Made by a program: the position numbers and the translations under genes. 51,485 bases of DNA from Perkinsus chesapeaki ATCC PRA-425 (taxonomy: Eukaryota; Protista; Perkinsozoa). Below the pieces are notes generated by a model that saw only the letters and a list, made by a program, of their open reading frames with translations, did not search any database and was not told where the DNA came from. Location: NCBI GenBank assembly GCA_013115145.1, contig JAAPAO010000219.1, forward strand, positions 1 to 51,485, in the 5' to 3' direction. Below, one piece after another: positions 17,100-38,070 of this stretch (positions within the stretch are counted from its first letter, which is position 1; each line of letters begins with the position of its first letter).

Positions 17100-20000
17100 A
17101 TGCCTACGGCCCCATTAAACAGCGGTAGCAATGTTGTTGCTCCTAAGGTTGTGACGTCTCCAAAGCCCAGTGCAATTAAAGGGACGCATTTCTGGCAGAA
17201 CCCCTTCGTGAATGTTATGAAGGTGAGCTTGGGGCTACCAGAACACTTGGGGCTTTACTGGGGCAACGTTGGAATATCTCGTAAGGCTCCTTGGAGGAGT
17301 TATGATTTAGATAGACTGCCTAATAGTGAATATACTACAGTCAATTATCTAAGGTAGTTAACTGGTTGAGTATATCACTAAAGTCTGAGTCAGAGTCCAT
17401 AGTCCATCATACCTGTTCGAATTCATGTGGAGTGTCACAAATTGTCAAGTGATGCACGGTGTCAGTATGTAGGTGTTATAATATGTATTATTTGACTTTC
17501 TCAAAGATACGTTTACGCATTGGAAAGATTCTCCTTTCAAAGTTATGTTTTCGCACTGGAAAGATTCTCCTTTCGAAGATATGTTCTCGCACTGGAAAGA
17601 TTCTCCTTTCGAAAAAATGTTTTCGCACTGGGCAGATCTGAGTCAGTGTCAATGAAAAGATATATGGAAAGAGAATTCCAGACTCCTATTTCTTCCGAGT
17701 CAATTTTTTGCTCCATAATGAAGTTTCCGGCAGATATTTGGTGGTAAGGCCGAGACTAGAGGTGAAGTGTCCGAGGAGCTCGATAAGGATATATCGAAAA
17801 GAGTTAAAAGAATATACGGCAGTATATCAGCTAATAACTATATACGGTATCCTGGGGCGAAGAGCCAGGTGAAGACATTGGAGCTTACGGGTAAGGATAT
17901 GCCAGGGAGAGCTTGAAAGATACTTTTATTTAAATTACAATAAATTTGGCATCAAAATCAGGATGCTGTCCATGCCTAGGCTGTAGATAAATATGTATCA
18001 GGAGTATAGAGGAGTAAAAATTAAGTCTCAACTCGCATTTTTGACCAAGTTAGCTCTGCACACTCAATTCCGGTATCTCGATGAAGCGTACTGCAAATGC
18101 ACAAGCTTAGGTACCTGAGCTTTCATTTCGTGTGTAAAACCCCTGTATACCAAACATATTGTTCTATTGTTGCCAATGAGTGCATGATATTGTAGAGGTA
18201 TATTTGCTGTTATAAGGGATCGTACGTCCTCACTGGTGAAAAAGTGGTCGTTGAAGGCCAGGAAGATTTAAGCCTGTGGTATGGAATGACATTATTGGCC
18301 TTATGGGCGTAGACTGTATTAGGCGTATAGCCCAATAACCAAGTTAAGTAAAAGACAACTAGAGCGGGACAAATGACTTAACAACTCTGAGACTATATCT
18401 GGGCATAGCGACTGCGCATAGCGCAAGAGCCTGATGAATATGAGCCGCATTTTGATTGTTGTTGTCGACGCCTCAGGACGGGCTTAGTCTGACGTTTGGT
18501 TTGTGAATGCTACTTCTGTTTTATAATTTTATATATGCTAATTAGTTATACTATTAATAAATGGTACCAGTGGTCTGATTCAAATATAGAGTATTGCACA
18601 TACACAATATAATAAAGGTAGATTGAAAAGTATTAGTAACTAAATAACAAAGAAATAGTCATCCTTTCGTATAATCTTCTTTCGGGGTTTCTTATTACAT
18701 ACTTTGTGATCAGGTAACTATCTTTATATTGTAATGCGTACAATAGCCGACAGATGCTTTGTTATCCATATCGATGTCGAAGGTTCAGATGGCAATAATA
18801 TAAGGATATCTTTGTCGAACATGTAAGCTCGGAAATTGTTACTGCTCCTCTTTTTTCGAATAATATCTCTTCCGACGCCAAATTGGATCACGGTCATAAT
18901 TTCACTCGGGCTCTGACAGTACCAGGTAGGATATATTCTCAGAAAATTAGTATCAGGAATATATTTCAAATATTTATTTATGAGTCCCCTCGATCGTATT
19001 GAGAACGCGTAAGTGGAGACGTGTAAGCCGTGGATGCGAGAGTATCTTCTGAGCACAGCACTTGCCAGCAGTTAAGCTTTATTAGCAGCAAGAATCACAA
19101 CTTTATCTACATTAGTACTCGAGTACTAAGCAGCAGCAAGAATCACAACTTTATCTACATTAGTACTCGAGTACTAAGCAGTAGCAAGAATCACAACTTT
19201 ATCTACATTAGTACTCGAGTACTAAGCAGTAGCAAGAATCATTCATGTCAGGGAGATGTAAAGGATGGCGTAATAGTAAAGATTTCTATGGTATTTGGTA
19301 AATGTATTGCGCCACGTGAACGCAAAGTGTGATCGATATGGTACGTAACCTAATTCTGCCCATCAATAAGACGAAATACAATGTAGCTGGCGAAAAAATT
19401 AGCCCGCCTCTGGCGCGCATTTGTAGATGACACGTACTGTACGTCATGGCGTTCGATTGTCTCGCCGCTAACTCGCAGTAATATACATTGACGGACATTT
19501 ATATTGTTGTTAGAGGACACTAGATGTGTTCAATCATGTCAACCAATTAGGCTTCTTCAGTGGTGCCTATGTGGTGAAGCTTTCCGCTGTGAAATGTTTC
19601 CAGGTTCAAAATGACTAAGGTGCAGGCGCCCAGGACCATACAGTGTCCGATACATCCTCCCCATGACAAATGGTGCGTATTGTGTGTCTACATCAGCGGC
19701 GTTATCGCGCTCTATTCGCCGGGTAAGGGAGCGAAGCCAACACACCTTTTGCCCGATGTAAGACAATTTCGTGGCGCAGTGACGGGGATAATCATCAGGT
19801 TCATTTTGTAAAGAGCGTTCAAATTGGTGCGTCACTTTTGCTCCGCGGGATTTACACTAGTGATAATCATTATTTACTCGATGACCTACCTCGGGAAATG
19901 CAGCCGACGCATAAGGAAGTGGAGATAGGATGGATTGAGGTGCCGATCAATTCGAGCAGCGAGAATCCTAGAGGTAGTCAATGTACGACTCGTACAGTAC

Positions 20001-23000
20001 GAGATATATGTCGATGGTATTTATATATGATAATCACACTGTGAGATGAGTGTCTCGACTGGCCGACTCGAACCCGCAGACGGCAATCGCTGTCCCGCAG
20101 GTTTTGTTAGGAACGTAATCAGAACAGATGAAACGCTGCCGAGTCGGGGGATTTGGATTCATTCCAGCCGCGAGAGCGGTATGAGATTTTTCAGATGACA
20201 ATAAGATCGGGTCTGACACCACCGACAGTATAATGACGCGTCTGGAGGCGAATTCTCCTGAGGGGACACCAGCAGCACACAAGTTGAGCGCGCGACAAGA
20301 GCAAACGGATCAGGAAAATGAGGTGAGACATGAACTCAACGTAGCGCTGGGAAATTTAGAAAAAATTATTATTTTTCGTTAGTTTTGCATACGCATTTTT
20401 TCAAGTGCAAAATTTGCATTTCCTTCGAAATGAGCATTTTCTGATGGATGCCACTTTCCGGGGTGGGCAACCCTTGACGTTTTGCATGGGTCAGCAGTAC
20501 TGCTCAGGCCAGTCTGAACATGGATTCGAATACCATCGAACCGATACCGCGACAGCAGGGGATGAAAGCTATTTCGTTGATACCTCCAACTAGTATGCAA
20601 CTGAAGCAAGTTGTGTGCGCTAGGCCGCAGCTGGGAGGCAAGAACATGTCGAGGAAGACGACCGCCAGCCAGCGGAGGTTCGCCGTGTGGGTTCGAGATC
20701 AGGTGAGGGTGGCGGGTGGCGGGTGGTCCTACTTAATGGGTTGGCAGGATTATCTCAGAGGTGCGTAGAGTTGTGTTGGACGTTGATGGTTCGGCAGTAC
20801 GTTCTAATGGAGAGCTGATCTAGTTCTACGTTCTACTCAATTGTACGATTATCGCAGACGCCGATTAACTTGCCACATGGATTTCTGCTTTTAAATGAGA
20901 TTGTCTTAAATTTCGTTCCCCAAGCCCGAAGGAAACATTCAGCAGTGATATCATTCGTTGTTGAAATATTGTCTCTTTTTTTCTCAGCAATCATCACAGA
21001 AACCTGTCGTATGTGCTTCGTCTGCTGGTCACTTATCGCTTTCCTCCATCAACTCGACCGTGAGCCGCGAGCCAAGGCTGATATCTGGCTCTGGTCTCGT
21101 GGCCTGTCTGGCCGGGGCTGACTCTGGTAACACCGTTATTACGGCGGAGGCAGGTGAGATGTGATGTGAGGACTGTATTTCATCTTGATAGGCTTCAATT
21201 TCTCATGAGTGCGCCCTTTTTTATCGAGAACTGACAAAGGGTTTATGAGTTCTCAATAAAAAGGTAGAGGTACTCATAAGCTTTATGATAAAGCTAAGAC
21301 TAAACGAGATACGGGGAAAAAATTCCTAAATTAAAAAAAATAAAATTTTCCCTAATTTCCTTACTTGAACTTCCCGCGGCTCTCGCTTAACGAATATGAA
21401 CCCCTTCTGGCGGCCTCAGTCAATCTCAGAGCCTCCAGTAGCGCGAAAGCGTTGGCCGAACACTACCGAAAAATCATTCGTTTTTTTCCTTGTCGGCCAC
21501 CACAGAGGAAGTTCTAGCACCTCCAATGTGATGACTTTCAGGAACGCCGCCTGTCATCCGTCTGTGGAGACCGACCGTCAGTCAAACTCAACCTGTATGC
21601 ATTATAGCATGCCCGATGTTGGCAGGTGAGGGCTATCTGTAGCCGACGCTGGAACACTTTCCATCTCAACATGAATTTTTGATTGGTGACTCCGATCCTA
21701 TCGGCATTCGCCCGTTGCGTGAGTTGTTGAAGTCTTCAACTTGGAGACATCAATCTTTTTGCGCAAAATGTATCCTTGTAAAATTCAGAATCCGACTGTT
21801 AGAAGAAATGGGAAGAGAAAAATAGAAAACGCTCGAGAAAATGGGCAGTTCCCTCTTAGAGGCGAAGACACTTGAACGTGGACTTGGAAACTTAAATCTG
21901 CGTCCAGGAGATCGAATCCTCCCCGTGGCGATGTTGAAATCGTCAGCGCTCTCGCGGATCTTGTCTTGATGTCATCAAAGCACGGCGTTGATAGCGAATC
22001 CGATATTCTAAAGTCAGATTGTAGCTCGATTATTTTCAAGACTTGGTTAAATTCTTTTCAGCTCGGGAACAACTAAATAATAAATGAAATAATATTTTTT
22101 TTGGAGTCCCTAACAAGAACGCAGGCAAGAGTTTCTACTATATTCCACTTCACGATCTGAAGTCGACGACACTCTATTCTGTCATTCGCCGACAAGGGGG
22201 CTGCGGAAGGGTCTTCCATACCGCAGCCCCGTCAGCAGCGTCAGAGAGAACATGCTGCGTGTCAGGTGTAGAGGATATCTGCTCTGACGCGGACTCGAGA
22301 AGATTATGTATCGTGGGAAAGGACGCTCAAAGGAAGCAGCAACAGTTGTTCCTGTGGAGCATTCCAAACCCACCGACTCATACACCGGGGAGAGCTATAG
22401 TGTGCAAACCGGCGGAGCTTGTCGCTAAGCAGGTGAGCTTTTGGACAGCGGAGGAGAAGTGTGGAGAGTATTATGAAAAGTAGATTTTTTTGCTCATGAA
22501 GTTCACGAATTTCTGCGGTTCAGCAAGGCAGATATGATCTGTGATCTGATGGGGCAAACGAGGAATATAAAAATTCAGAGCAATAGCATCCTAGCTTGAA
22601 AACCGCATTTTCCGACCGACTATTCGAGATTTAAGAGCTCTGGGAGGCCCGACAGATATCCCAGGGCGGATTCTTCGATCGGCTTAGCTGATGGTTTGGA
22701 ACTCCTCTCAGCTCTGCGGTGCGTGGCCGATTCAAGCGATGAAGTTCTCTCCATTCCGACCGTGGAATGTCACTAGCATCGTCTCCTGCGGTTTCGAGAA
22801 CATACGTTTCTGGCGCGCCAAGGATCAACATCTTGCCGGCGTGTCGGTACAGTTGAACCAGTTGGCGAGGGATACGGTCTTTACAGATTTGGACTTCGAA
22901 GGTATGCAATTAGATTTTGGCCAGTATGGTGGATCGTTCTGGAAATTTGGCAAATTTCAATTTGTCGGAGGATTTCCCAGATCTTGCCGGCGAATTAGAT

Positions 23001-26000
23001 TTGCTTCGGAAAATCGCAGTACACCTCTCAACATCAAACTCCTTTCATGAAATCCACGGCGTAAAATATTCAATTATGATCAACTCGCCCAACGAATGGT
23101 CGATAGGTAGCAAAGTGATGGCGCCTCGTTTGTGTGGCTTACTGGATGATAAGCACAGCCGAACTTGTTGTTCTTGCCTGAGCCACATGTGTTTAGCAAG
23201 CAAGAGCCTTCGACCAGCAGTGGGAGTCGAGGAAGAAGTCGGGAGCAAGGAGGCAGATGCAGTTCTTTATTACCGAGTCTTCGTCTCCACGGCGTGTGGT
23301 CGAGTGGTGCAGATCCATTACAACACGAGACAGATTGAGAATGTGTGAGTGATCGATTTTACGAATTGTCTTCGTCGGTGCTGTTGTATACCTTCTCAAA
23401 GCTTATAAATACGTTTTTGTCTATGATGAAGTTGATGGTATATAATTGATAGATACGTGTACAGCTCAACATCAAATGCCAGTCATGTGTGATCAATAAG
23501 CTGTGTCTACTGTGATATTCCTCTGTTAGCTAGAATTATCTCTAGCTATTATAATCATTCTGAATTCACTAGAAGAGCGTACAATAATTATTAAATAGAA
23601 TTCAACAAAAATAACAAAAAAACAAATTCCGTGAAAATAAATACTATATTTCTAAAATATTTGTGAGGTACAGTAGAAATACTCTCTCTCTGTTAATTCC
23701 TGTTCCTTTGGCTTGTAGATTTCGCTTGCACGAGGATGGCTGCCCTATATGGGCCATATCTGTTACTGAAGGCTTCGTGTGCACGGCTGGAGGGGATGGC
23801 TTTGTCAGAGTTTGGCCCCTAGATTTCACCAACTACTATATGCAGGCGAAAGTGAGGGGAGCAATTAATTCCATCACACCGATCGAGTTCGGCATTTTCC
23901 TTGCGTAGAACCTTCGCAAAAATGATTTCGAAAAATGCGCTCAATAATAGGAACTTTGGCGGAAAGCATAAACTATTCTTAATGTGACGATGAAGTGGTG
24001 TTTGGGAAGGACTGGTGGTAACTCAAGGAACGACGGAGGACTCAAAAAGGCTTTATACAGAGTGGTACCAACCCTCCTGGGGCGGACCGTTTCACATGCA
24101 AGTATCTTGGCGAGCGAATTATCAATATATAGTAATACACACTGTCATCATCATCTTAGCCATTAGACAATACAAACAGCTCATCCATAACACGCCCCCC
24201 TACGGTGAGACATCACCGTCACAGGTTAAGGGGCACCAGTTCTCAGTGGTGAGATCAATCCATTCTTCTGGTTCACCATTACTCCACCGGATAAGAACTT
24301 CCATCAATCCACATTGATCAGCAACTTCTCCTTCGTACCAGTCACCTCGGCCTTCAGTATCGACAATCCATACCCGGAGCCGTAAACCAACGAGGCTCGG
24401 GCCCTGCTCGCGGGGAGTATAGTCAGACGGATGCCGAGAAAGAGGAACCACATTGTAGGAGTGTTCTACAGTACGGGCGCCAGTTGGATGAACGACCTCA
24501 ACACGATTGTTAAGGCGCTGCACCACATGGGCGATGACGAAAGGCAGAGCCAATTTACGGGGAGTGGGAATGTAAACCAGAACAGTAGAGCCCGGGTCAA
24601 GGTCGCCGTAACCAGCTCGTAGTCGGGGGTGAACATTCGCATTAGCTTTTTTGATACGCGACCAAACCTCGGAAAGGTAGACTTGTCTAGCTTGGCGACA
24701 AACTCGGTAAGGGAGCTGAGGAACCTCCAGCTTAACAGCAGCAGACGCACCAAGTGTCCGTACATGACCATAAGCCAGAAGGTCGGGACACAGGTAGCGG
24801 AGCTCCGGACCGCTCACAACATAGCCTCCTAAGGGCATGGTGTTGTGAGTGAGAGCCACACGGTCATAAAGGGTCTCACGGTCGACGGGGGAGAGTAGTC
24901 TTACGCGACCCGCACTATTGCGAGTGAGATTGCGCAAGTAGTTCAACATAGTACGATGATGGCGTTCATGGCTGCCGGTCCAGGGCGCATGACGGGAAAG
25001 TAACCGTACTTCAGCACAAAGCTTACTCCATGAACTCTCCCTAAACTCGCGGCTCCTAAAGTAGGAAGCGCAGTCGACCCATAAGATCTTCATACCACCA
25101 GTGATGACCTGAATGCGGGCCAGAGTAGATATAACATTGGCTGTGGTCTCGACACCGGAAGGCAGATCACGCCATATACAATGCCTAGTGAATCGGCACT
25201 GGACACTGACGGCTTTAATTCCTTCACCTAGCGCTATCACATCGGCAGTGGCAAAGGTATACGGTGGGTACTTGGACATCTCTTCTGTAGTGAGGTCACC
25301 ATTGCCCAAACCAGGCGGAGAGTGCCATCCTCGAACGGCATAGGCCAAGCGGCAAGCGATACATCCACCAATCACATCACGAGTCGCACTGACAATCGCA
25401 GTGAGGTGAAAGTGGTTAATGGCAGCCAAAGTACCGGACAACCCGCTATGAAGGGATCGGCGATGAGCATCCAATATAATCAACCGTCGCAGAATGGTTG
25501 CGCTCCGTGGGATGTAGAAGGATAGGATGGCCTCACCGGAAGGTAGGCCGCCGCGAAACACATAGACTTCTGGGCAATCCCGACTGCATAGTAGATGTAG
25601 AGGACCGCCGTCTTGGGGCTTGCAATCCCCGAGATAGCTAGCTGTAGCGCCAGTGCTAGACAACATACATTTTTGGGCGGACCGCGCAGCGATAGCAATA
25701 TTGCACCGGTCGTAGCAGCCAGTCTCGCCGAAGACGAAGTCAGCTTCCAATGTAGCCGACTCACCACGAGCCACAGCTCGCCAGGCTTTAAGAAGCAGCC
25801 TTATCAAGCGCACACGCCACAGGGCGGACTCCAAATCATAGCAGTTCCTCGCAATGCCCTCGATAATTGGCTCGGGGTCACAATGCTCAGTCCCACTGAC
25901 ACGTCGCACATCGGAGCTCACACGACCTATGGAGTCACGCGCGGAGAAAATGGTGCCGGCCGTCATCATAGTCATAGACAGGATGGAGGTAGAACGACAA

Positions 26001-29000
26001 TGGTCGTCAATGGTGAATAGTGAAGAGAGACCGTTTCTACACTCCGGCATATCCTCGTCGTCATCATCACGCAGTAGGCAGCACGAGTCGGAGACGAGCT
26101 GTAACAGGTCGGCATCGTCCACATTGGGGTCATCACCGAGGAAAATGTCCTCAGGCGAGGGCGAGCCCGGAAGCTGCCTCTCTGCATCAAAAATAGCACA
26201 ACACTGGTCCTCCAAGATCTCACGGGTATCTAACACGTCGCCCCCCTTGCGAGGAATTAGCACTTCACCTAGACAACGGTCGGCTGCATCCGTTACAGGC
26301 CTGTCTAAAAGGCGACTTAGAGCGTCCGCGTGAACATTAGAGGAGCCAGGAATGAACTCCAATGACAGGGTGCCGTGCTTCCGGATGACATTCAGCTCCG
26401 AACCGATAGAGTCGACCAGGCGAAAAAGAGCTCTCCTCTCGAGAACCTTCGATGACTGGAGCTTAAGAGAGCCAGATCGGATCCATGCCAGACTTGGCCG
26501 GTTATCAGACCGGAAACAAACGTCAACCGAAACGCCTCTTCGCCGCTTGCAAGCAGACTTGCAGCAGTACTCGGAGATCTCGGCGACCTTGCGAAGGGCC
26601 AGTAGACAAACACGTAGTTCTCGCCGGTTACTGGAGTGAAGGGTTTGACTACGAGTGAACCGCACAGCGTCCTCGTAAATCAGTTCACCATCGGAGTAGA
26701 TTGCATAACCCCCTCCGAACAGCGATGCGTCGCTACAGACCTCGAGCAATATAGGACCAGACATGACACGGCGGACTGCCACATCATGTGAGCAGGGTTG
26801 TGCCTCGAGCTTGCAGATCTCTTGGCCCCACCGAAGGATTTCAAGATAGGCGAGCCGAATGTCGGCGTCGAGCACCGCAAGGTCGCATGGCACATCCCAT
26901 CCTATGTCCGCGAAGTAACCTCCAATAACAGACCTTAGGACGTCAGCCAGCAACCTCGCACGAGCATGGAGCTTGGCACAGTCAAAGGATAGAAGACCAG
27001 ATACACCGAAGTAGTCCTTCTTGGTGAGCTTCTGAGAAAGCGGAGAGTCTTTCTGGAAGAAGTCGAGAGCTCGACCAACTCGTAGCGCACGGCGGCAATC
27101 TGTAGTCAGCAATGTCCGACCAGCCTTAGTGACATAGGAGAAGGCCACATTGAAGATCGTAATCGTATCTCCAACAATGGCGTCAACATTATACTCAGTG
27201 AAGACCGCCTGCATGCTTTTCACGTCCACGGCTGCCGTCGCAACTGCCAGCTTTTTCTCTTGCGAGAGGAAACCGGCTAGTGCCAGAAAGTATAGCAACT
27301 GGCAAAGGTCTCGGGCGACTGCAACGGGCATACCGGCAAGAACCAAGTCGTCGAAGTAGTCGTGGAGCCACGAGTCGGTCGCTGTATCACTGTCTCTGTA
27401 GCCGGCTACCCCAACGCCTAGTGTCCCGCGAAGCGCCAAAGGTCCGGCACCGATCCCGAAGGAAACTCGGGTGGTTATATACGTGCCATTGGCGGTCTTC
27501 ATGGTGATGTAGGCAGTACCAGACTCGGCACATATACGAACCGAGTAAAACGCCGACTTGATGTCGGCTGTGATAAGGGCGCAAGGGGCCACCAACCTTA
27601 TGGAGCACAGAATGTGATAGAGACTAGGGCCACCATGGAGAGATGCCGAAGGCAGGGCCGAATTGATCGGTCGCAGATCACATAAACGGCTCTTTACCGG
27701 CTGCGAAGGGTTGGCGCCACTGCTCACCAGGAACACATTGGCCACTGGAATCCTACATGGAGGTGCACTGCTGTTGCTGAACGGTGCTGCGACCCAGAAA
27801 CCCTTGGCCACAAAGTCGGAAACCAACTCGGAGTAGGATTGCTTCAAAGCGGCTGAGAGACGACGGTACATCGCTCCAGCGTAATCACTCACAGCGACTC
27901 GCGGAACAGTGAGCTTGGGAAGCCAAAGCTCGGCAACATAGGTCTGGTTCGGAACGTCGAGCCGTTCAGCTGGCAGCAGAGGGCGTACTCGAGTATGGTA
28001 AGACCCTGAACAGGACACATCCAACCATCCTCGGGACGCGATAGACCGCCAAAGTGCATGAAGCTCTGCTTCAGTGTGAGACGGAAGCTTCACCCTCACG
28101 GAGTCGGCGAGGACAGGGGCAGGAGAGATGACCGAGAAGTCGGAGGAGTCAACCTTCTTTGTAGATACGTCGGCATTGTAGAAGAGACCCTCCGTGTCGT
28201 CATCAGAGAGTGTTCGGAGACTTGCGCCTGTAGGACGACTAAGGACGCCTTTCTGGAGCATGCCGTACACCTGCCTATCAGCTATCCAGGCGCCCGATAC
28301 GCCTTTACAAAGAATCTGCCACTGATCGATGAGATCTCTGCCGACAAGGCAGTAAGGTTTCGGCCGGACGTCGTTGCTTGACGAGGCACCAGACTGCAAG
28401 GGGAGGAATCGAAAAGTGTGCTCGATGTTGCCGAACCACTCATGGCTAGAGATATCACGCACCGATACTGCAAGTTGAAAAAGGTTATGGACTTGAATAC
28501 AACGGCCGTCAGCTAACTGAACCTTTGCTGGGTTAGGAGCTGATGACGAGTCGAAGGGTAAGTGATCCAGAGGAGAAGTCGATACAAGATAAGATGCACT
28601 GGCACCGGTATCGACAATTCCGGTCACAAGAAGAGTATGAGATCCCTGGGTGAGGCACAAATCCAGGGAAACTTCAGACAAAGGGCGTTGTTGCTGAACA
28701 CCGGAAGGCGAGCTACCGAGACAGAGAGCATCGTCAGGGACACCGGGGAAATCAATACCGGCACGGGGCTCATCAGAATAGTGCGAACACGCAGAACCCT
28801 TAGAGGGGACCGTCACAAGGGCTTGCGAGACCGCCGTAGAAAGGGTCGAAGAACAAGAAGAGGAGATATATCTTGTAGGCTCAGAAGGGCCTTCGTGAGA
28901 GCTGCCTACTGGCTCGCACGGCCGCGAGAGTTTTTTGACTCCCTGTTGTAATCGGCGTCGAACTGCTTAACCCTGGAGTAGAGCTTACGATCAGTGAAGC

Positions 29001-32000
29001 AGTCGGTAGCAGCCGTCTCGCCAGCAGACCGGGTAGCAAACGCTAACAATGCATAGCGTTGCCCACGCCGGGAGGTCATATACTTAACTTCAGAGGCAGC
29101 ACCCAGTCCAGCAGAGTTCGCTGGGGCTTTCTCGAGCTTCTCGACACCAGGACCAGTAACAAAGAGCACATATGGTTGCTGACGAGCCCAATCCATGACA
29201 CCACGGTACTCCTTCTTGACGTTGGTGTTGCCAGAATCAGAAGTGTAAAGTAGCCTGTCACGGATATCCTTGGATCCCGCTTCTCGGTCGGGAAAACGAG
29301 AGGGCTTCCTGGCATCCGAAACAACTGTTAGTGACTGGCAAATGTCTCCAAGGATAGAGAGTATAGTCACCTCATTGGCCTTTCCGTCGAATGGTAGTCT
29401 CAATTGCCACTCTTTGGAAATGCTTTCCGGCTTCAGCAGTCTTGCGGTTTGGGTCACTTGCTTCACGAGATCAGCATAGACGTCAGATGGAAGGCACCGC
29501 AAGACGGAATTTATGAAGTGGACATTGTTAGCAGACCGAGGAGTACTCTGCGAATCAGCGTGACAGACGCTATTCGCCAGAATACGGAGTTGTCGAACAT
29601 CAGCCACGAAGGAGTCGAAGGACAAAGCACCACGAAAAGCGAGCTTCCCTGTTCTCCTACGAAGTTCGCGTCTGACATTATCGGGCCGGGAGAACTTGTC
29701 TAAAAGAACAGACTTCACTCTGTCCCAGTCGCCGCCAGCCTCATCGACAGTAGCATTAGCTTCGGCTATCACACCGTCATTGTCAGTCAAGGTATCAATG
29801 AGCTTCTCCACGAGGTGACCCTCAAGGTCGGTGTCTGGTGTGAACTTGCCGTCAACGAACTTGGCGAAGCCAGATGCGACGAACAACTGCTCAACTCGCT
29901 TGAAGTGAGTGGGTAGCAAGAAAGGATCCTTCAGTGCTTTGCTCGCAACTGAGAGGCCATTGATGTCAGCAATTCTGGCTCGCAAATCCGGCGGTTTGTG
30001 CAGTGCCGAAGTTAGTGCCGTAACCAAAGTCGAAAGACCACCATCCACCGGGGAAGTAGAAGTAACAGGGGGAGGTATGAAGGACTCCTTTGCAAGTTCG
30101 GATATCCTACATGTAGCTTGATCGGCTAACTTAGCCAATGCCTCGATATCATATTCGAGTTTTTCTTCCTTGGAGTAGAGGTCGGCGAGATCAGAGTCGT
30201 TAATACCATCTTCGTCGTCAAAGTTCAGACTGCGAGTCCGGTTCCTGATTTCCACCAGTTCTTTCATCTTACGGGTCCTTGAGCCACGAACTGTAGCTCT
30301 GAGCTTGGCGAGGCTCTCACGGTCGGGCGCGTTCTGAATGTCGACAGCTGTCACCATGTTTGGGAAGGACTGGTGGTAACTCAAGGAACGACGGAGGACT
30401 CAAAAAGGCTTTATACAGAGTGGTACCAACCCTCCTGGGGCGGACCGTTTCACATGCAAGTATCCTGGCGAGCGAATTATCAATATATAGTAATACACAC
30501 TGTCATCATCATCTTAGCCATTAGACAATACAAACAGCTCATCCATAACATGGATAACGTGTTCCTCAATAGAAGAAACATCATATATACTCCTCCGTTC
30601 GATACCCTTCTTCGAATCGACTTGTGCATCCCCATTATTCAGCTGCCGGCTCCCGTATACGGTCTGGATCTCACCCCAGATGACCTCCATTTGCTATGTT
30701 CGGTCGGAGATGGCAGCGTCGGTGTCCTTGACTTGGAATCTTGCAAGTGAGAGCTTTCCGTTTGGTTGATCCTCAGGCTTCGTCAGATACACGGTGGTGT
30801 CCCGATCACACAAGAGCAAGATTCGTTCAGCGACCTTGTCATCCTGCGGCACTAAGTTGTGCACAGCGGCGTGTGATGGGTCTGTGAGGGTTTGGGAGAT
30901 TGATAATGGTATTGCCAAGACGCTTGTGGAATTCAAGGCGGAATCGGTGGGTTTTCGGGTTTCGGATTTTCTTCGTCACTCTTTCATATCTTTCATCTTC
31001 CCAACGAAGTTGAAGTTACCCGTTCCAGACGGCGGTGGGGTGACAACTCGGATGCTTCCAAAGAGTCGTCCAAGCTCATAGGAATTGATCCCTTGGTACG
31101 ATAAAAAAGTGTTCGTAGAAAATATCCCCCGGTTACTGACGCGGAGGAGATGCAATAGAAATTATTCCAAAAATCATCTTCCTATGCTACAAACAGGAGA
31201 CATGGAATGCATTCGTTCTGTCTGGCCCAAGATCCTTTGTTCCCCTATCACTCCCTCTCAGGACACCCCTTCATCCCTGGCCTTCCAACCACCTTGTAAA
31301 ATCGATGCCGACGAGGTCCCTCTTCTCGCCGTTGGCTTTGCCTCTGGTGCAGTGATGCTGTTCGAGATCTCGCCAGAAGGAGAGGCGTCGCCGATTGTCG
31401 AGTTGAAGCAACATGCCCACCCTGGTGAGTGAGTCCATTTTCGTGGCGCGTGACCCTCTCCGCAGTTACATCGATTTCGTTCGCATCGGTTTCGCCGGCA
31501 ACGGTGCTGCTGCTGACGGGGGATGCAACTGGTCGAATTGTGGTTCACGATGAGGCGCGGAACTTCGAAGCGACACGGTGCCCGGATCCGGTGGTCTCGA
31601 AACCGATCCTACCGGTTGTTCCGGCGATGGAATCTCCGCAAGAAGTTCAGGTGTGTGCACGATGGGCTTTGGTATGCTGTGAAATGCAATTGCACATTCG
31701 TATCCTTTTATATTATGATGAATTTCTGACGACGAAAGAACTACTGTGTAGGATGACAGGATGAGTAGCTGGCAAGACCAGCTTGATATCAAGGAGCTCG
31801 GGAGGATGACTAAAACTGGCATCGTTATTAATCGAATATAGCCATTGTGAATGCGGTTAACGTTTCAGCGTCGGTAACTTGACAATTCTTTTTAATGACA
31901 GTATAAGATTTCTTCACCTGATCTCTAATTATTTATTATACTTCGGCTTGTCCTATTTCTTGGCCCAATTCCTACATGTCAGTGAAACTCTACCGGTTTA

Positions 32001-35000
32001 GGTCCAACCGCAAACGTTCGTTGTTCGGCCAGGGAGAGTTCAAGAAATGATAGCTTTGTATTCTCACGAAAGATGCATTGCGCTAGCTCAGCTACCCGAG
32101 TTTGAGCCCTTGAGGATGTTGAGAATCGGGCAACACCAGAGCGCAGCCGCGGCAATTACGGCTTACACGGTGGGTTGGGACATTTTACTGTATTGCCATT
32201 GTACTGTATTGCCGTTGGACTGTATTGCATTGTACTGTATTGCCATTAAGGTGCCCATACTACGTATTCGTACATGCAGCATTGCCTGAGCGATACTGTA
32301 GAGTGAACTCATCAATGTGTCACTCATTTCAGTTCTCGGCGGACGGCGCTCTCCTTATGGTGGGCCTCAGCGACTCCTGGATTAGAATATTTGATCCGGA
32401 GACAGGCATGCTGGAGCACTCCATCAACTGTGTTATGTCGGTAACAAGGATGAACGATGTCGGGCTGGTTGCGATATGCAATCCTACCAATGCAGCATTC
32501 GTGTCAATTATGTGATGTGATGGTGTCAATTCACAAGTGGCAGTAGCTAGTGACAGTTTGCTTCCTTAAGCGTGACCTCCGGTCTACTTCAAAGTATACT
32601 CCTTAAAAGTGGAAGCTCCCCGTACCTTGAACGCACCCTTCGGCAAGTCTATTCCGGTGGACATTTCTCTGACTCATATTTTCGTGGAGAGTATTATCGT
32701 GATATGGGTTCATGTAGGAAAAACGAAAACCCGAATCAACTCAACCTCGTTACATAAAAGTAAATGCTGCCTAGGAGCGTGTACAGTTCGCCATTGTAAC
32801 TAGTGAGAGTCAGTGAGGCCGACGGTTCTGCGAAAAGATGTTTGCCGGCTTCAGGGAATGATAACAGCGTTGTACATGAGCAGCATTTTGGGGGATTCTG
32901 ACGTTCGTAAGATCCTCACGGCGGGGCACCTGGACAATCAGCTTAGGATCAGCGACTATTACAGAGATGTAGGCTCTATGGGGTTGGACTTGATGGGGTA
33001 GGATTCGACTTGTCTTTGAGCTGCTGCCCCCTCCCCCCGCACTCTGACTCTTTGCGTGTCACGGGAGCATGGAGTTATACAGCCTCACGGGAATGTGTTG
33101 CTAGTGCGAAGACACATTAGTGGCTAGAAAATATGTAACCATGTCTTGGGGAAATATGTAACACATCCCGTCTGGGTCTTAGACTCTGGGGCCATCTGGT
33201 GTTCCTTCATGGCAGCATGTCTTATTGGTATCGGAACATATCCATATGGTCGCTTGAATGCCTCACGGAAGTTGATGAAAATCTTGAGGTCTTCGAGAAC
33301 TTTCGTCCGGAGCAGCGAACGTGTGAAGGTTTGGTGAGGAGATTTTTTAGGACTCAAAAGTCCGTTATTCTTCGCATATTCGGTCTCTTCACTTGACTTG
33401 ATTCGGCGGACGCTACGGCGTTAAGATATACCGTATTAGACTGTATCCTCATCTAACTACTTTATCGTCCACTTAAGTGATTCTTTGCTGCAGTAGCTGC
33501 TGACAAGACCCGAAGACTAGCTCGGAATCTTTTTTACAAAAAGCGATTCAGCATTGATATGGCACTTTTGAAGTGATAAATCCCCGTGCGTTCTTCAGGG
33601 AATCTATTTCATTATCTGTTTCTGAAGTGTCATACGCTGTTTCAGACCCGCAGCCAAGATCCTTTGCATCGTCCTAATGAACAGTCTTATCATGCTCATC
33701 ACTATCCTCCGTAAGCTTTAGTGTTCATATGAGTAATTGGGGCATTTAATAATTGTCATATATTGTTTCAACTAGAGTACTTATTAACTCATCGCTGCGA
33801 TGGGAAGGCCTGCGGGATATGATACCAGGACTTGCTTTTCAATCTGAAACTATTAGACCGTCTCGTATTAGACACCACGTACAGCAGAGTATAGATGGTA
33901 GATATGTCGCTGGAGCACGGATCAACCTAAGATGCATTGTCCCTCTATGTCCTCCAAAGGGTTGCTCTCGTCTTCGTTGGGATTATTATGGAATGCTGAG
34001 TGATTCGTTTGAGCAAGTTGCTCCCAGGAAATGAGTCCATCAGTGTTGGAATATAATGTTAATATATTATTAATAACCGTTGGGAGAGGCAGGACGACAC
34101 CTTCCCCTACCACGAGGGGGGAACACAATCGGACGTTCGCTTGGCCAACCTCCGACTGAGTGTCGGTTGTATTTATTATTTACATCCGTCAATTTGTAAA
34201 TACAGGATTATATGATATAATCTTCCTTATTCGATTGGAACCTGAAGCTCTAAACAGAATCGATAAAATAAATACACTCCTCAGTCCTGGAAGGTGCGGA
34301 AAACTTTGGGCGAAATTTCTTCTATATTTTCTTCCCTCGCCAATATGTGTAGTCGCATGCTTGTAGATATCTTATTCAGGCGAACTGTCTTTGCAGTCGG
34401 TCAGCTGCTTATCACAGTCAGTAACGCTGAGGTGTGTCTATGGGAGTGCCCTGATCCGGGCTTAAGCTCGGCGATTAACAGATTGCCGTTGAGAGAACTC
34501 CAGGATAAACCGCCGCCGGCTCAGAACCCGACAGAACCGCGCGGCGAGATGGTGGTTGTCGAGGGCCGTGGACTCTTCCAATCGGTCATTGAAGAGGAAA
34601 ATACGGCAGTGCCGGAGAGTCAGAAGCTTCCAGAAATTTTGGAAGAAAACTGTGAACCTGAAATTGACGATGTCGTGGAAGTGGCACGGCTCGATACTGG
34701 GGCAATCGTCGAAGAAGTCGTCACGAAAAAAGCGATATCAGTTGAGCGGAGCGAAGCTGCGGAGAAAATAAAATACAAGCGATTCTGTGGTGGAGGAGCC
34801 GCTGTGCTTTGGCTGAGCGAGCTGGGGCACCTTGCCACTGGATGCCATCGGTGGGTTCATCTCTGCAATTTGGTCGAAGATCGCGACAGCTATTTGATGG
34901 TTCCGGAAAAGTTACCGGGCCCCAACAGAGTGACATCACTCGACTTGAGCCCGTTGACGATGCGGACCTTACTTGCGCTCGCCGATGATGGTCGATGGAT

Positions 35001-38000
35001 GATTGCCTGGGACTTGGCGAAGGCTGGACTGGCATACTCATCTCAAGATGAATGTGGATCGGATAAAGGTCTTGAATTCGTAGAGCCCCTGGTGAGTGGA
35101 ATCGAAAAGGGGGATGAGTGTGATGCTCGATGAACGTTAGGTCTCATTAGAGGCCCTGGTCAATTCTAGCGCAAACGATAAGTATCAGCGCGCGGCTGTA
35201 AAAAGGCGCGCGCATCAGTAGATAGTAGGTGAGTGTTTCAATCCAAGGTTTGGTATTAGCAAACATAGAATAGGCGGGAAGCGTGTAAGTATGGTAAAGT
35301 GTAGTCATAAGTTGGCCATCTTGAAGCCGTAGGATCAGTACGACAGAATTTGTCGGATATGGAGTTAGATTATATGAATATAACTTCAAGATTTTCTTTA
35401 GGTTGAATGAGTGACAGGTCTGTCCTGGAAGGGTCTTTAGGGTTTGATAGAACATAACCCATGGTGCTAGATCTCAGCGAGGCTGAGTTGTGAGTGATAA
35501 AATATAGGATAGCACCATGCATTTATGGAGTTTTGTATCCAGGACATCCTGTGACAATTCCACGGGCCTCGGGTTGGGGGTTTGTGGACTTGTCCTTCGC
35601 ATCACACTCATTCGACCGTATAGATATTAGGGAGAGCTTCACGTTGGAGCAACTAATTGAATGTGTTAATAATTGTTTTTGTTGTTTCAGTCTGTAACTC
35701 GCCTTACTCGAGTCGGAACTGCATGCAAGTTGCTCGCTGATAGCCTCGCGGTTTCATGTGCTCGATCTATTGCAGATCAAGAGGGAAACGTGGCCCAAGT
35801 AAATAGCGGCGAAGTTTACGATGGATCGTTGGGCAGAGATATCCAGTTTGTATATCACACCAGTTTGACACTTTTTGGCAAATGATGATTCGAGAAAGAT
35901 CGGTAACTTTGCGGAACTAGATTATTGAAGGGTGCACCATTTGACGCACCTTCGTGGATGTGTCAACGTCGGAGACCGACGAGTCTGCTGTTAAGCTCAC
36001 ATGATAGGACAATTCTCGTCTAATTCGTAAAGTGGCACTTATACCAATGAACCATTATAGACAACTCGCAAGGGCGGAGAAAGTAAAAATTCTTCGCGTG
36101 TGAGGAAAAAGGGCGTAGAAATGTGGCCGTTGTTTGGCTCTCATCAATTTACTCCACTTGCTCAGATAACTGTTTGGGGCCTCCCTCGCGCTGAGCCGTG
36201 CGCCGAAGCGAAGGTCCTCACCACGGCCAATCTGCAGCTGCCGGATGCATCAGGCTCTGGTGATGAAGTTCAAATTGTGAGAATCTTTTGCATCGCTCCG
36301 CCGAGATGATATGTGAATGGTCAGGTCGTGAATCCACTATCGGCTATGGAGTTCGTTACCATGACAAGCGATAGTATAATTATGTGGCAGCTAGCGTCAT
36401 CGGAAATCGACGAGAATGTCTGCGGCTGGGGTCTTGCCTTTAACGAAGTACCGCTGCCTGAACAACACACCAGTGAGTCCTGTGCATAGTCCCACAGGGA
36501 GTCATGCAGATTTACGGAGAAGTGATACTCGAGCATCAATAAGTGCTCCTACACTTTCTAAATACAGAATTTATACTAATAATATAATGAACTAGTTATC
36601 TATTCTATAGATTATGCTAGAAAAGTGTAACCAATAAGAAATGTCAAATGCATTCTGGTAACATCTGCTGTTCATCTGGCGTCCTGCATTAGAAGGTGTG
36701 AACCTCTTCTTCACTGTTACTGCTGAAGCATCCAATTTAACTGCTGTTATTGGTAGTGTGCAATCTATACGGGATCTCAGGCGGTTGGATGGCAATTGTG
36801 ATCCTCATGCGTTCGCACTTCTCATTTTCCCGCTCTCTCAGGTACATTATCATCCATTTCCATATCGCCGCCTCACCTCTTTATTGGTACCACCACAGGC
36901 TTTGTCATCATCATCGATTGTGACCAGTGCGAGCTCCTCACTGCCGTCAGTGTGATATCGAACAGCAAGCCACCGTCCTTCACGAAAATTGCTCCGCTCC
37001 CGATTCCTAGTAAAGCGTCAATTTTCACTTGTCTCGTTACTACTGAGGAGGATAAGCTGCAAAGTGTTGAAATATGCAAGGATCTTTTGGGCACGTGGGA
37101 AGCCAAGCTCGATCCTCACATCATTTCCTTTTCCGAGCCGATCGGGTCGATACAGTTCTACGGCTCGAGCAACGAGGGCGTAGTTGTGACCGAAGGGTCA
37201 GCTTCTACTGACTGGTTCGTTGATTGGGATAAGAGAGCACGGGCTCGGCTGCGGGCGATGGTCCCACGAAGCCCTGTGGGTCTCGACAGTCGCAACAACT
37301 TGCTGGCAGTGGCGAACACGAGAGACTTGGTGGTGTATCGTACTGACGAGCACGGAAGAATAGAAGGCCTCACTCGATACCGCGAAGCACGTTCTGAAGC
37401 AGTGACGATAAGATGCGTCGCTATAATATCCAGCGATGACCCTATCTCGGCGGTTGTGGGGCTTTCGGATGGTCGGGCACGAGTGTACAATCTGAACCCT
37501 GAGAAGGGTCAGGCTGATTACATCCAACTTGATGTCTTCCGCGAAGTTCCGCTGACGGCCGTGGCGGCTTTCTGCGGCAGAAGGGTTCTCGTTGGTAGCG
37601 GAACCGGAGTTCTGGCGTGGACGGTGGTGCCAACTGTGAACTCTCAGGCAGCGCGCCTGTCTCGTTTGGCGAGCGCGCCTGCGAAGGACGGCATCAAACC
37701 TTGTGTGATGCAGATTTCGGTTGCTCCAGGAGGCGCTACATTTTGTGCCTCCCTTTCGAGAGGGCAGCTTTGGGCCGGGTGTGTTCGCAAGCAGCCTGCT
37801 ATACGGTGCGTGATGCAGTCCACGTGGACGGTCCGCGATCTGAGAGCTTCAGTGTGTCTTTCTCAAGGAAGAGTCGCCTGCTGTTCAAGCACGTGCATAC
37901 TCCTTTATAAGATTGGAACACCTGTTCCGGTGTGGACGCAGTCGTTGGAGTTTCCCCCCTCTTTGATGGGCCGGCTAGGCTGCAGCATGATTGTAGTTGA

Positions 38001-38070
38001 TGGCGATGGCCCGAAGCTGACACCTTTTAAAGTCGAGGAGGACAAAGGGCAGCTGGCTGAGGACTTGTGA
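17100..38070 (+). CDS. WDR90: WDR90/POC16-like centriolar WD40 protein with N-terminal CFAP20-like domain; many exons; retrotransposon in one intron
   Basis: Exons match recalled WDR90 motifs in order: FWQNPFVNVMK (17100-17223); IYGSISANNYIRYP..LELTG (17734-17890); YLYIVMRTIADRCFVIHID..IRISLSN (18714-18822); VKSVQIGASLLLRGIYTSD; LCIVGKDAQRK; SIVSCGFENIRFWR..VFTDLDF; GGDGFVRVWPLDF..QAK|gt (~23870); ag|LPAPVYGLDLTPDD (30643); RSHKSKIR..CDGSVRVWE; LAVGFASGAVMLF; final WD40 exon to 38070. 3' end uncertain. Confidence 0.88.
17496..17637. repeat. 36-bp tandem repeat, ~4 copies, WDR90 intron 1
   Basis: Unit ~ctttcgaagatatgttctcgcactggaaagattctc. Confidence 0.9.
19084..19241. repeat. 48-bp tandem repeat, ~3.3 copies, each with an 18-bp perfect palindrome
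   Basis: Unit agcagcaagaatcacaactttatctacaTTAGTACTCGAGTACTAAgc. Confidence 0.95.
21205..21295. repeat. Intronic imperfect inverted repeat plus abutting palindrome
   Basis: atgagtgcgcccttttttatcgagaact / agttctcaataaaaaggtagaggtactcat, followed by agctttat-g-ataaagct. Confidence 0.7.
23999..24192 (-). repeat. 3' LTR (194 bp)
   Basis: Direct repeat of 30357-30550 with 1 mismatch (gtatcTtggcg vs gtatcCtggcg); TG...CA ends. Confidence 0.97.
24193..24201 (-). other. Polypurine tract AGGGGGGCG abutting the 3' LTR and overlapping the pol stop
   Basis: Minus strand reads ccgTAGGGGGGCG|TGTTATGG. Confidence 0.8.
24200..28936 (-). CDS. pol: Pol: protease, RT, RNase H, integrase, SH3-like (DUF5641-like) and Tudor-like C-terminal domains; reached by -1 frameshift
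   Basis: IVDTGAS; GGPSLYHIL..ADIKSAF..RVSFG..YFDD; CSDAS..RRELR..RSDN..HADALSR; H-x4-H..C-x2-C; TADV..WVD-x35-E (APWTGSHERHH). No stops in 1538 codons; the frame is open back to the slippery site. Confidence 0.95.
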   Translation of the reverse strand, partial: KKLSRPCEPVGSSHEGPSEPTRYISSSCSSTLSTAVSQALVTVPSKGSACSHYSDEPRAGIDFPGVPDDALCLGSSPSGVQQQRPLSEVSLDLCLTQGSHTLLVTGIVDTGASASYLVSTSPLDHLPFDSSSAPNPAKVQLADGRCIQVHNLFQLAVSVRDISSHEWFGNIEHTFRFLPLQSGASSSNDVRPKPYCLVGRDLIDQWQILCKGVSGAWIADRQVYGMLQKGVLSRPTGASLRTLSDDDTEGLFYNADVSTKKVDSSDFSVISPAPVLADSVRVKLPSHTEAELHALWRSIASRGWLDVSCSGSYHTRVRPLLPAERLDVPNQTYVAELWLPKLTVPRVAVSDYAGAMYRRLSAALKQSYSELVSDFVAKGFWVAAPFSNSSAPPCRIPVANVFLVSSGANPSQPVKSRLCDLRPINSALPSASLHGGPSLYHILCSIRLVAPCALITADIKSAFYSVRICAESGTAYITMKTANGTYITTRVSFGIGAGPLALRGTLGVGVAGYRDSDTATDSWLHDYFDDLVLAGMPVAVARDLCQLLYFLALAGFLSQEKKLAVATAAVDVKSMQAVFTEYNVDAIVGDTITIFNVAFSYVTKAGRTLLTTDCRRALRVGRALDFFQKDSPLSQKLTKKDYFGVSGLLSFDCAKLHARARLLADVLRSVIGGYFADIGWDVPCDLAVLDADIRLAYLEILRWGQEICKLEAQPCSHDVAVRRVMSGPILLEVCSDASLFGGGYAIYSDGELIYEDAVRFTRSQTLHSSNRRELRVCLLALRKVAEISEYCCKSACKRRRGVSVDVCFRSDNRPSLAWIRSGSLKLQSSKVLERRALFRLVDSIGSELNVIRKHGTLSLEFIPGSSNVHADALSRLLDRPVTDAADRCLGEVLIPRKGGDVLDTREILEDQCCAIFDAERQLPGSPSPEDIFLGDDPNVDDADLLQLVSDSCCLLRDDDDEDMPECRNGLSSLFTIDDHCRSTSILSMTMMTAGTIFSARDSIGRVSSDVRRVSGTEHCDPEPIIEGIARNCYDLESALWRVRLIRLLLKAWRAVARGESATLEADFVFGETGCYDRCNIAIAARSAQKCMLSSTGATASYLGDCKPQDGGPLHLLCSRDCPEVYVFRGGLPSGEAILSFYIPRSATILRRLIILDAHRRSLHSGLSGTLAAINHFHLTAIVSATRDVIGGCIACRLAYAVRGWHSPPGLGNGDLTTEEMSKYPPYTFATADVIALGEGIKAVSVQCRFTRHCIWRDLPSGVETTANVISTLARIQVITGGMKILWVDCASYFRSREFRESSWSKLCAEVRLLSRHAPWTGSHERHHRTMLNYLRNLTRNSAGRVRLLSPVDRETLYDRVALTHNTMPLGGYVVSGPELRYLCPDLLAYGHVRTLGASAAVKLEVPQLPYRVCRQARQVYLSEVWSRIKKANANVHPRLRAGYGDLDPGSTVLVYIPTPRKLALPFVIAHVVQRLNNRVEVVHPTGARTVEHSYNVVPLSRHPSDYTPREQGPSLVGLRLRVWIVDTEGRGDWYEGEVADQCGLMEVLIRWSNGEPEEWIDLTTENWCPLTCDGDVSP
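28888..28936 (-). promoter_or_regulatory. -1 programmed ribosomal frameshift signal (A AAA AAC + 6-nt spacer + stem-loop)
   Basis: Gag codons TCA AAA AAC (28936-28930); the -1 frame is open into pol. Downstream GGCCGTGCGAGC-loop-GCTCTCACGAAGGCC. Confidence 0.85.
28906..30357 (-). CDS. gag: Gag (483 aa from ATG 30357): coiled coil, capsid-like core, C-terminal RRM-like domain, no CCHC
   Basis: Intact ORF between the 5' LTR and pol; helical core (HFKRVEQLF..WDRVKSVLLDKF); YVLFVTG..RYALLAF. Confidence 0.9.
   Translation of the reverse strand: MVTAVDIQNAPDRESLAKLRATVRGSRTRKMKELVEIRNRTRSLNFDDEDGINDSDLADLYSKEEKLEYDIEALAKLADQATCRISELAKESFIPPPVTSTSPVDGGLSTLVTALTSALHKPPDLRARIADINGLSVASKALKDPFLLPTHFKRVEQLFVASGFAKFVDGKFTPDTDLEGHLVEKLIDTLTDNDGVIAEANATVDEAGGDWDRVKSVLLDKFSRPDNVRRELRRRTGKLAFRGALSFDSFVADVRQLRILANSVCHADSQSTPRSANNVHFINSVLRCLPSDVYADLVKQVTQTARLLKPESISKEWQLRLPFDGKANEVTILSILGDICQSLTVVSDARKPSRFPDREAGSKDIRDRLLYTSDSGNTNVKKEYRGVMDWARQQPYVLFVTGPGVEKLEKAPANSAGLGAASEVKYMTSRRGQRYALLAFATRSAGETAATDCFTDRKLYSRVKQFDADYNRESKNSRGRASQ
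30344..30356 (-). other. Primer binding site TGGTGACAGCTGT (tRNA-Leu-like)
   Basis: Directly follows the LTR-terminal CA. Complementary to a tRNA 3' end ..ACAGCUGUCACCA, recalled as typical of some eukaryotic tRNA-Leu. Confidence 0.75.
30357..30550 (-). repeat. 5' LTR (194 bp)
   Basis: 193/194 identical to 23999-24192. Confidence 0.97.
32187..32244. repeat. ~15-bp degenerate tandem repeat (actgtattgccattg), intronic
   Basis: Four actgtattgc cores. Confidence 0.7.

Follow-up and report, generated by a model that had tools for sequence, protein, structure and literature searches.

The 51,485-nucleotide contig JAAPAO010000219.1 of Perkinsus chesapeaki ATCC PRA-425, a parasite of oysters and clams (GenBank assembly GCA_013115145.1), analysed over its full length and called the window below, carries on its minus strand a long terminal repeat (LTR) retrotransposon of 6552 bp (23999–30550), the Pol polyprotein of which ends in a Tudor-like domain. 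This tail is a genuine Tudor/Agenet-type domain of the Royal family, Tudor domains being small modules of a type that reads methylated histones; it is appended to a complete integrase as the last 56–64 residues of Pol. It probably tethers the complex of integrase and cDNA to a histone mark and so biases integration, a reading to which a probability of about 0.6 can be given and which is built on the analogy with the chromodomains of chromoviruses.

The core of the tail is a peptide of 56 residues (Pol residues 1475–1530) encoded by the reverse strand of 24227–24394 and followed by 8 further residues and the stop codon. The initial annotation of this DNA had reported a Tudor-like domain here; its coordinates and the peptide it quoted are exact, but the domain is on the minus strand, the forward translation of the interval being nonsense with stops. 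A four-sequence profile of the last 80 Pol residues was used both for a profile search of the PDB and for AlphaFold2 (AF2) modelling. In the profile search, 7de9_A came first, with the whole 66-residue chain covered and an expect value (E) of 0.011, followed by short matches to cpSRP43 chromodomains and to the Polycomb-like (Pcl) Tudor domain; a profile of the whole Pol again placed 7de9_A first. The AlphaFold and Foldseek check that the initial annotation had proposed for the last Pol residues came out in its favour: the AF2 model has a predicted local distance difference test score (pLDDT) of 80 overall and at least 90 across the core, and contains no helix and five strands (21–27, 33–43, 48–53, 60–63 and 68–71 of the 80-residue piece), which form the strongly bent antiparallel barrel of about 60 residues that is typical of Tudor and Agenet domains. 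The best Foldseek match of this model in the PDB is likewise 7de9_A (E 1.5e-3, template-modelling score 0.76 on the target, 30% identity), and Tudor readers make up 50 of the top 50 matches, with Spindlin, PHF20L1, PHF20, Pcl and SGF29 after 7de9_A. The likeness to plant PDS5 Tudor domains that had been pointed out is therefore upheld, since this nearest solved relative by both profile and fold is PDS5C/RDM15. The SH3-like stretch quoted in the same annotation lies just upstream of the tail (about residues 1411–1460), so that an additional Royal-family domain does follow the integrase core and an SH3-like, GPY/F-like module, in the position that the chromodomain occupies in the Pol of chromoviruses.

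Homology of the tail to curated Tudor/Agenet families was found through its profile. An exhaustive search of 1.84 billion representative proteins gave 48 matches at E ≤ 1e-3, and in P0051, P0052, P0037, P0025 and P0048 the aligned stretch falls on a Tudor_5, PTM_DIR17_Tudor or Agenet domain of Pfam; in single-domain proteins such as P0051, P0052 and P0037, the stretch lies exactly where Pfam puts Tudor_5 or PTM_DIR17_Tudor. Matches with several stretches are arrays of Agenet/Tudor domains, and poly-Tudor arrays include P0005, P0007 and P0009. MORN repeats were considered for these multi-stretch matches and rejected, as Pfam shows Agenet/Tudor arrays. The strongest matches outside retroelements are large proteins of stramenopile algae with about 10–20 tandem Agenet/Tudor domains, namely P0005 and P0014 (Phaeothamnion), P0007 (Tribonema) and P0009 (Tetraparma).

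A search for relatives retaining the domain, also suggested by the initial annotation, found the tail in every one, across three Perkinsus species (6/6 copies examined). Its 56-residue core is 55–93% identical among five gap-free copies, while the sixth, L005, has a 2-residue insertion. The pairwise ratio of nonsynonymous to synonymous substitution rates (dN/dS) over the 56 codons is 0.08–0.36, with dS saturated in most pairs, and in comparison with P. marinus few parts of Pol are as well conserved as the tail. These comparisons indicate that purifying selection maintains the tail in three or more Perkinsus lineages. The relatives comprise P0002 and P0003 of P. olseni, with 74–76% identity in the integrase region, a second lineage in P. 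olseni (P0055/P0006), P0004 of P. marinus at 50% identity, and a separate P. marinus lineage (P0010/P0059) with 38% identity over the whole Pol. Among the genomic copies, gag and pol are intact in L003 and L005 of P. marinus; in P. olseni, L001 has 1 frameshift in gag and 2 frameshifts and 1 stop in pol, L002 has 3 frameshifts in pol, and L006 has 2. Word-indexed homologue searches with the integrase region, the four-sequence Pol profile and the tail region of the environmental protein P0065 reached nothing beyond Perkinsus proteins or the cluster of the query itself. The GenBank model FOL47_003744 (P0001, window 24200–30384) fuses gag and pol into a 2039-residue host 'hypothetical protein', and the P. 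olseni and P. marinus relatives also bear the label of host hypothetical proteins.

A more detailed view of the possible ligand is given by the binding pocket of the nearest solved relative. It has been reported that in 7DE9, the Tudor domain of Arabidopsis RDM15 (PDS5C) bound to an H3K4me1 peptide, the methyl group lies in a cage of W616, Y623 and Y641, D643 and D645 hold the ammonium protons, and E647 and Q654 hold H3R2 (PMC8184781). These residues were mapped onto the tail through the HMMER alignment of the PDB profile search. Y623 corresponds to an invariant Y and Y641 to an invariant W in the Perkinsus tail, while W616 corresponds to I or V, preceded by an invariant W; D643 corresponds to an invariant N, D645 to E or D, and both E647 and Q654 to an invariant E. 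By this alignment, two of the three RDM15 cage positions are aromatic in the tail, and its predicted pocket is partly kept and partly remodelled relative to that of RDM15. Because the predicted pocket is modified, the exact ligand of the tail is uncertain.

In the proposed mechanism, the integrase would first bind the cDNA ends; the tail would then dock the integrase–cDNA complex on nucleosomes through a mark on a histone tail, most likely a methyl-lysine read in the manner of the RDM15/PDS5C Tudor domain with H3K4me1, and this docking would bias the landing sites of new copies. The role as a cis-encoded chromatin tether is proposed by analogy with the chromovirus chromodomain, which directs integration to marked chromatin according to work cited in PMC12477816 and 10.1101/2021.11.30.470311.

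Several observations weigh against this interpretation. The first cage tryptophan of RDM15 is replaced even though an invariant W adjoins, the D643 position is N in all Perkinsus copies, the strand bearing the W616 position is wholly non-aromatic across the integrase-tail subgroup described below, and a canonical three-aromatic cage is not demonstrated by the alignment. Pfam gave nothing on the window's own tail as a single sequence, even at E 10. The E-value from Foldseek is marginal, and cross-matching occurs among small SH3-like barrels: a fold search of BFVD with the tail model gave no significant match, its hits including C-terminal fragments of foamy-virus Pol at E about 0.03. Many weak repeats add up to the scores of the poly-Tudor arrays. 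In addition, the insertions near genes that are described below are expected in a compact genome anyway and say little about targeting.

The alternative that survives best is a genuine Tudor-type barrel with a ligand other than a methylated histone, such as nucleic acid (cDNA or target DNA, the tail acting as a second integrase C-terminal domain), a methyl-arginine host protein, or an integrase subunit in the intasome. The altered cage positions (I/V for W616 and N for D643) fit such a role, as does the location of the tail directly after an SH3-like module, and the C-terminal domains of retroviral integrases are SH3-like DNA binders with a weak cross-match to the tail model. However, the closest solved and sequence relatives of the tail are histone readers, the acidic residues matching the H3R2 and lysine-ammonium contacts of RDM15 are conserved, and the element is already equipped with an SH3-like C-terminal module of the ordinary kind, so that this alternative is possible but clearly less favoured than a histone-reading tail. 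A chromodomain, which would make the element strictly chromovirus-like, is very improbable: it would occupy an equal position in Pol, and cpSRP43 chromodomains are matched by the profile over 19 residues at E 0.06–0.1, but the five-stranded model lacks the C-terminal helix, there is no Pfam Chromo match, none of the top 50 PDB fold matches is a chromodomain, and the full-length sequence matches are Tudor/Agenet proteins. Least probable, and already largely refuted, is that the tail is no functional domain at all but a chance resemblance or a decaying read-through into captured host sequence, as the blank Pfam result and the marginal PDB and Foldseek E-values might be taken to mean, since the tail persists across three species and no fewer than three lineages at 38–50% Pol identity with dN/dS well below 1, its AF2 core is confident, the database-wide matches to Tudor proteins are significant (E < 1e-3), and the overlap of the pol stop codon with the polypurine tract puts the tail within the essential 3′ end of the element.

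The tail-profile matches fall into two groups. Cellular multi-domain proteins score 9–35 bits and have RDM15-like residues at the cage positions, while a higher-scoring group (33–49 bits) shows the Perkinsus variant, with W for Y641, N for D643 and a non-aromatic first strand; in this second group, the domain lies 0–17 residues from the protein C-terminus, except in P0032, P0044 and P0045. In those higher-scoring proteins for which a longer sequence is available, the domain comes after an integrase. The environmental protein P0042 has rve and an Agenet-like tail; P0047/P0065, also environmental, have Integrase_H2C2, rve, an SH3 module with G-P-F and then the tail; and the environmental protein P0050 has SH3_Tf2-1 followed by the tail. 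The alignment of P0065 with the window integrase is collinear and extends from the core through to the tail (E 4e-10), the G-P-F of P0065 standing opposite the L-P-F of the window, and the contig encoding P0065 (L011) has RVT_1, RT_RNaseH and RT_RNaseH_2 above threshold just upstream. P0042 (L004 1–2683, ENA ERZ1764455) lies directly downstream of a PIF1-like/AAA helicase open reading frame (ORF), a context more suggestive of a DNA element than of a retroelement. As judged from these protein sequences, the architecture of an integrase with a Tudor tail extends beyond Perkinsus to environmental (metagenomic) eukaryotes. A wider picture is conceivable, though rather unlikely as a whole: an old, widespread and undescribed integrase group of marine protists, Ty3/Gypsy-like and possibly including a DNA element, of which Perkinsus would be the first named hosts, and in which a tail subtype of single origin, its remodelled pocket reading a histone mark of the gene-body type, would direct insertions to the non-coding portions of transcribed genes.

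As shown in Table 1, the element has the hallmarks of an LTR retrotransposon: direct TG..CA repeats, a target-site duplication, a sequence resembling a primer-binding site (PBS) and a polypurine tract are all present. It is the sole copy in the window, its gag and pol are uninterrupted, and it is apparently young or recently inserted, and intact. Its G+C content is 0.53–0.55 against 0.41–0.47 in the flanks, and AT skew is strongly positive on the plus strand across 24001–30000. The gag-like ORF has 492 codons and lies upstream of pol; it gave neither a Pfam match nor a CCHC knuckle. The pol frame is −1 relative to gag, shares 61 nt with its end and is open from 28966. The order of motifs in Pol (D-T-G protease, Y-F-D-D reverse transcriptase (RT), D-A-S RNase H, HHCC, D,D35E, SH3-like stretch, tail) gives the arrangement protease, RT, RNase H and integrase, with weak Pfam matches for the protease and RT. 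The integrase residues H1118, H1123, C1152 and C1155 (HHCC) and D1192, D1248 and E1284 (D,D35E) are invariant among relatives. Between RNase H and integrase lies a long spacer rich in Asp, Cys and Ser (residues 850–1100, window about 25500–26300), which is the least conserved part of Pol and has no family match.

Table 1. Features of the Perkinsus chesapeaki LTR retrotransposon in the window.
Feature	Positions	Strand	Basis
Complete LTR retrotransposon	23999–30550	−	LTR pair, ORFs
5′ LTR, 194 bp, TG..CA	30357–30550	−	One mismatch relative to 3′ LTR
3′ LTR, 194 bp	23999–24192	−	LTR pair
Target-site duplication, left copy, 3 bp, TGG on plus strand	23996–23998		Flank comparison
Target-site duplication, right copy	30551–30553		Flank comparison
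PBS-like sequence, starts TGG directly after 5′ LTR, length uncertain	30339–30356	−	Similar sequence at same place in P. olseni and P. marinus copies
gag-like ORF from first ATG, which straddles LTR/PBS boundary	28906–30357	−	Homologous ORF upstream of pol in relatives
pol ORF, 1538 residues	24200–28816	−	Single open frame
Aspartic protease region, D-T-G at residues 69–71	28307–28696	−	Sub-threshold Pfam Asp_protease_2/RVP matches and motif
RT region, very divergent, Y-F-D-D at residues 487–490	27137–27769	−	Sub-threshold RVT_1 match; D489 and D490 invariant
RNase H-like region, bounds approximate	26297–26749	−	Weak RT_RNaseH_2/RT_RNaseH matches at homologous place in P0004, P0057 and P0059; D696-A-S invariant
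Integrase: HHCC zinc-binding motif and D,D35E catalytic core	24617–25519	−	Invariant residues; Foldseek of low-confidence model; collinearity with Integrase_H2C2 + rve protein
SH3-like integrase C-terminal module, GPY/F-like	24437–24586	−	Five predicted strands, pLDDT 55–74; L-P-F aligns with G-P-F of P0065
Tudor-like (Royal family) domain, Pol residues 1475–1530	24227–24394	−	Profile, fold and conservation evidence
Polypurine tract, A-G6-C-G, abuts 3′ LTR, overlaps pol stop codon	24193–24201	−	Same tract in P. olseni and P. marinus copies

Both ends of the coding region are tightly joined to the replication signals. The first ATG of gag (30355–30357, minus strand) consists of the last base of the 5′ LTR and the first two bases of the PBS, which places the PBS inside the gag coding sequence; the copies from P. 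marinus and P. olseni show this arrangement too, with identical first Gag residues. At the other end, the stop codon of pol shares bases with the polypurine tract and is 7 nt away from the 3′ LTR (24193–24202), so that the Tudor-like tail lies directly against cis-acting replication signals. The target-site duplication is 3 bp at 3/3 complete copies in three species (TGG in the window, TCT and GCC in the flanks of L001 and L003), which is shorter than the usual 4–6 bp of LTR elements.

The initial annotation had assigned the element to a BEL-like lineage, and this assignment is not supported. The BEL/Pao signature families Peptidase_A17, DUF1758/DUF1759 and DUF5641 were not found in the window Pol at E up to 10 nor in the relatives P0004, P0010, P0055, P0057 and P0059, while relatives have weak, sub-threshold RT_RNaseH_2 and Integrase_H2C2 matches at the expected places, and the window integrase is collinear with that of the Ty3/Gypsy-type environmental element on L011. 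Pfam searches of the window Pol and its C-terminal pieces gave no integrase family even at E 10, phmmer of Pol against the PDB gave no match, and BLASTP between the window RT and the Gypsy-type RT of L011 gave no significant alignment; an RT as divergent as this cannot be placed by BLASTP or Pfam. The AF2 model of the whole integrase region is poor (pLDDT 43), and Foldseek with this low-confidence model matched only retroviral and Ty3 integrases, the Ty3–TFIIIB structure 7q5b among them, which lends soft support to the identification as an integrase. Ty3/Gypsy-like is the better guess for the element; its tail, of predicted Tudor-type fold, sets it apart from the chromoviruses, which are defined by a C-terminal chromodomain.

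The window copy lies antisense between plus-strand gene models at 17100–18312 (CFA20 domain), 19611–23908 (beta-propeller) and 30550–38070 (WDR90/POC16-type beta-propellers). WD40-like exons are found in both flanks, and on the left no open frame runs into the point of insertion; the three models resemble a single WDR90/POC16-like gene that the annotation has divided, the element occupying a non-coding spacer. The ATG of the third model consists of the last LTR base and the target duplication. Three other copies lie about 20–600 bp from the nearest neighbouring gene model, and the insertion contexts are short non-coding spacers beside or within genes in 4/4 cases. Scans of the window for tRNA genes and Rfam families found nothing, and hence there is no signal of tRNA-gene targeting.

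Mobile elements with their own chromatin reader show how the choice of integration site evolves. In land plants, H3K4me1 marks the bodies of transcribed genes, and a nearest solved relative that reads this mark points to a target preference unlike the heterochromatin preference of chromoviruses. Chromodomains were long the sole well-studied reader fusion; the first Tudor fusion was described from brown algae in 2025. A second lineage with a Tudor domain, made up of a very divergent alveolate element and a number of environmental integrases, would show repeated use of Royal-family readers that are not chromodomains. Recognition of the element also improves the annotation of Perkinsus, in which it stands as a host 'hypothetical protein' in GenBank and has seemingly split a neighbouring host gene model. 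It has been reported that 'retrovirus polyprotein' annotations and expressed sequence tags are numerous in Perkinsus, the elements being uncharacterised (PMC2868825), and that fusions of chromatin domains with transposable elements involve mostly Chromo and PHD domains in a broad survey (10.1101/2021.11.30.470311). No description of the Perkinsus family or of the integrase-tail Tudor subtype was found in the literature; the first alveolate case of a Tudor-bearing retrotransposon integrase is new, and so is the distinct integrase-tail Tudor subtype with its environmental integrase carriers.

The closest known system by description is Gypsy-10_Ec32 of Ectocarpus, which has a homologue in Tribonema minus and carries a C-terminal Tudor domain; its authors presented it as the first transposable element with a Tudor domain and proposed a chromatin reader for targeting (Genome Biol 2025, PMC12477816). 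This report overtakes the statement of the initial annotation that no Tudor-bearing element had been described. Like the Perkinsus element, Gypsy-10_Ec32 is an LTR retrotransposon with a Pol ending in a Tudor domain after the integrase, but its host is a stramenopile whereas Perkinsus is an alveolate, and the two are compared by description only. None of the 48 tail-profile matches is an Ectocarpus or Tribonema retroelement; the Tribonema protein P0007 is a poly-Tudor array without RT or integrase. Among cellular proteins, RDM15/PDS5C is the best profile and fold match, with 30% identity over about 60 residues. Two of its three cage aromatics and its acidic residues for H3R2 and K4 contact are conserved in the Perkinsus tail, whereas its first cage Trp and D643 are replaced, and cellular profile matches keep RDM15-like residues. 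Plant PDS5 and MSH6 Tudor domains are H3K4me1 readers, and RDM15/PDS5C is a cellular protein of cohesin, RNA-directed DNA methylation and repair pathways, while the Perkinsus tail is part of a mobile element.

Chromoviruses and other chromodomain-bearing Ty3/Gypsy elements (MAGGY; Chronos of oomycetes) resemble the Perkinsus element in having a Royal-family reader after the GPY/F or SH3 module; however, their reader is a chromodomain, and that of Perkinsus is a predicted five-stranded barrel of Tudor type. The integrases of DNA elements of the Maverick/Polinton type similarly combine rve with a C-terminal chromodomain and share with the Perkinsus Pol a C-terminal Royal-family domain, but they belong to a different class of element, and P0042 suggests that a Tudor-like tail occurs on a non-retroelement as well. 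Finally, integration sites are also set by tethering of integrase to a chromatin feature in the pairs of lentiviral integrase with LEDGF/p75 (PWWP), Ty5 integrase with Sir4, and Ty3 with TFIIIB. These tethers are host proteins or short integrase motifs that act in trans, whereas the reader of the Perkinsus element is encoded in cis within Pol.

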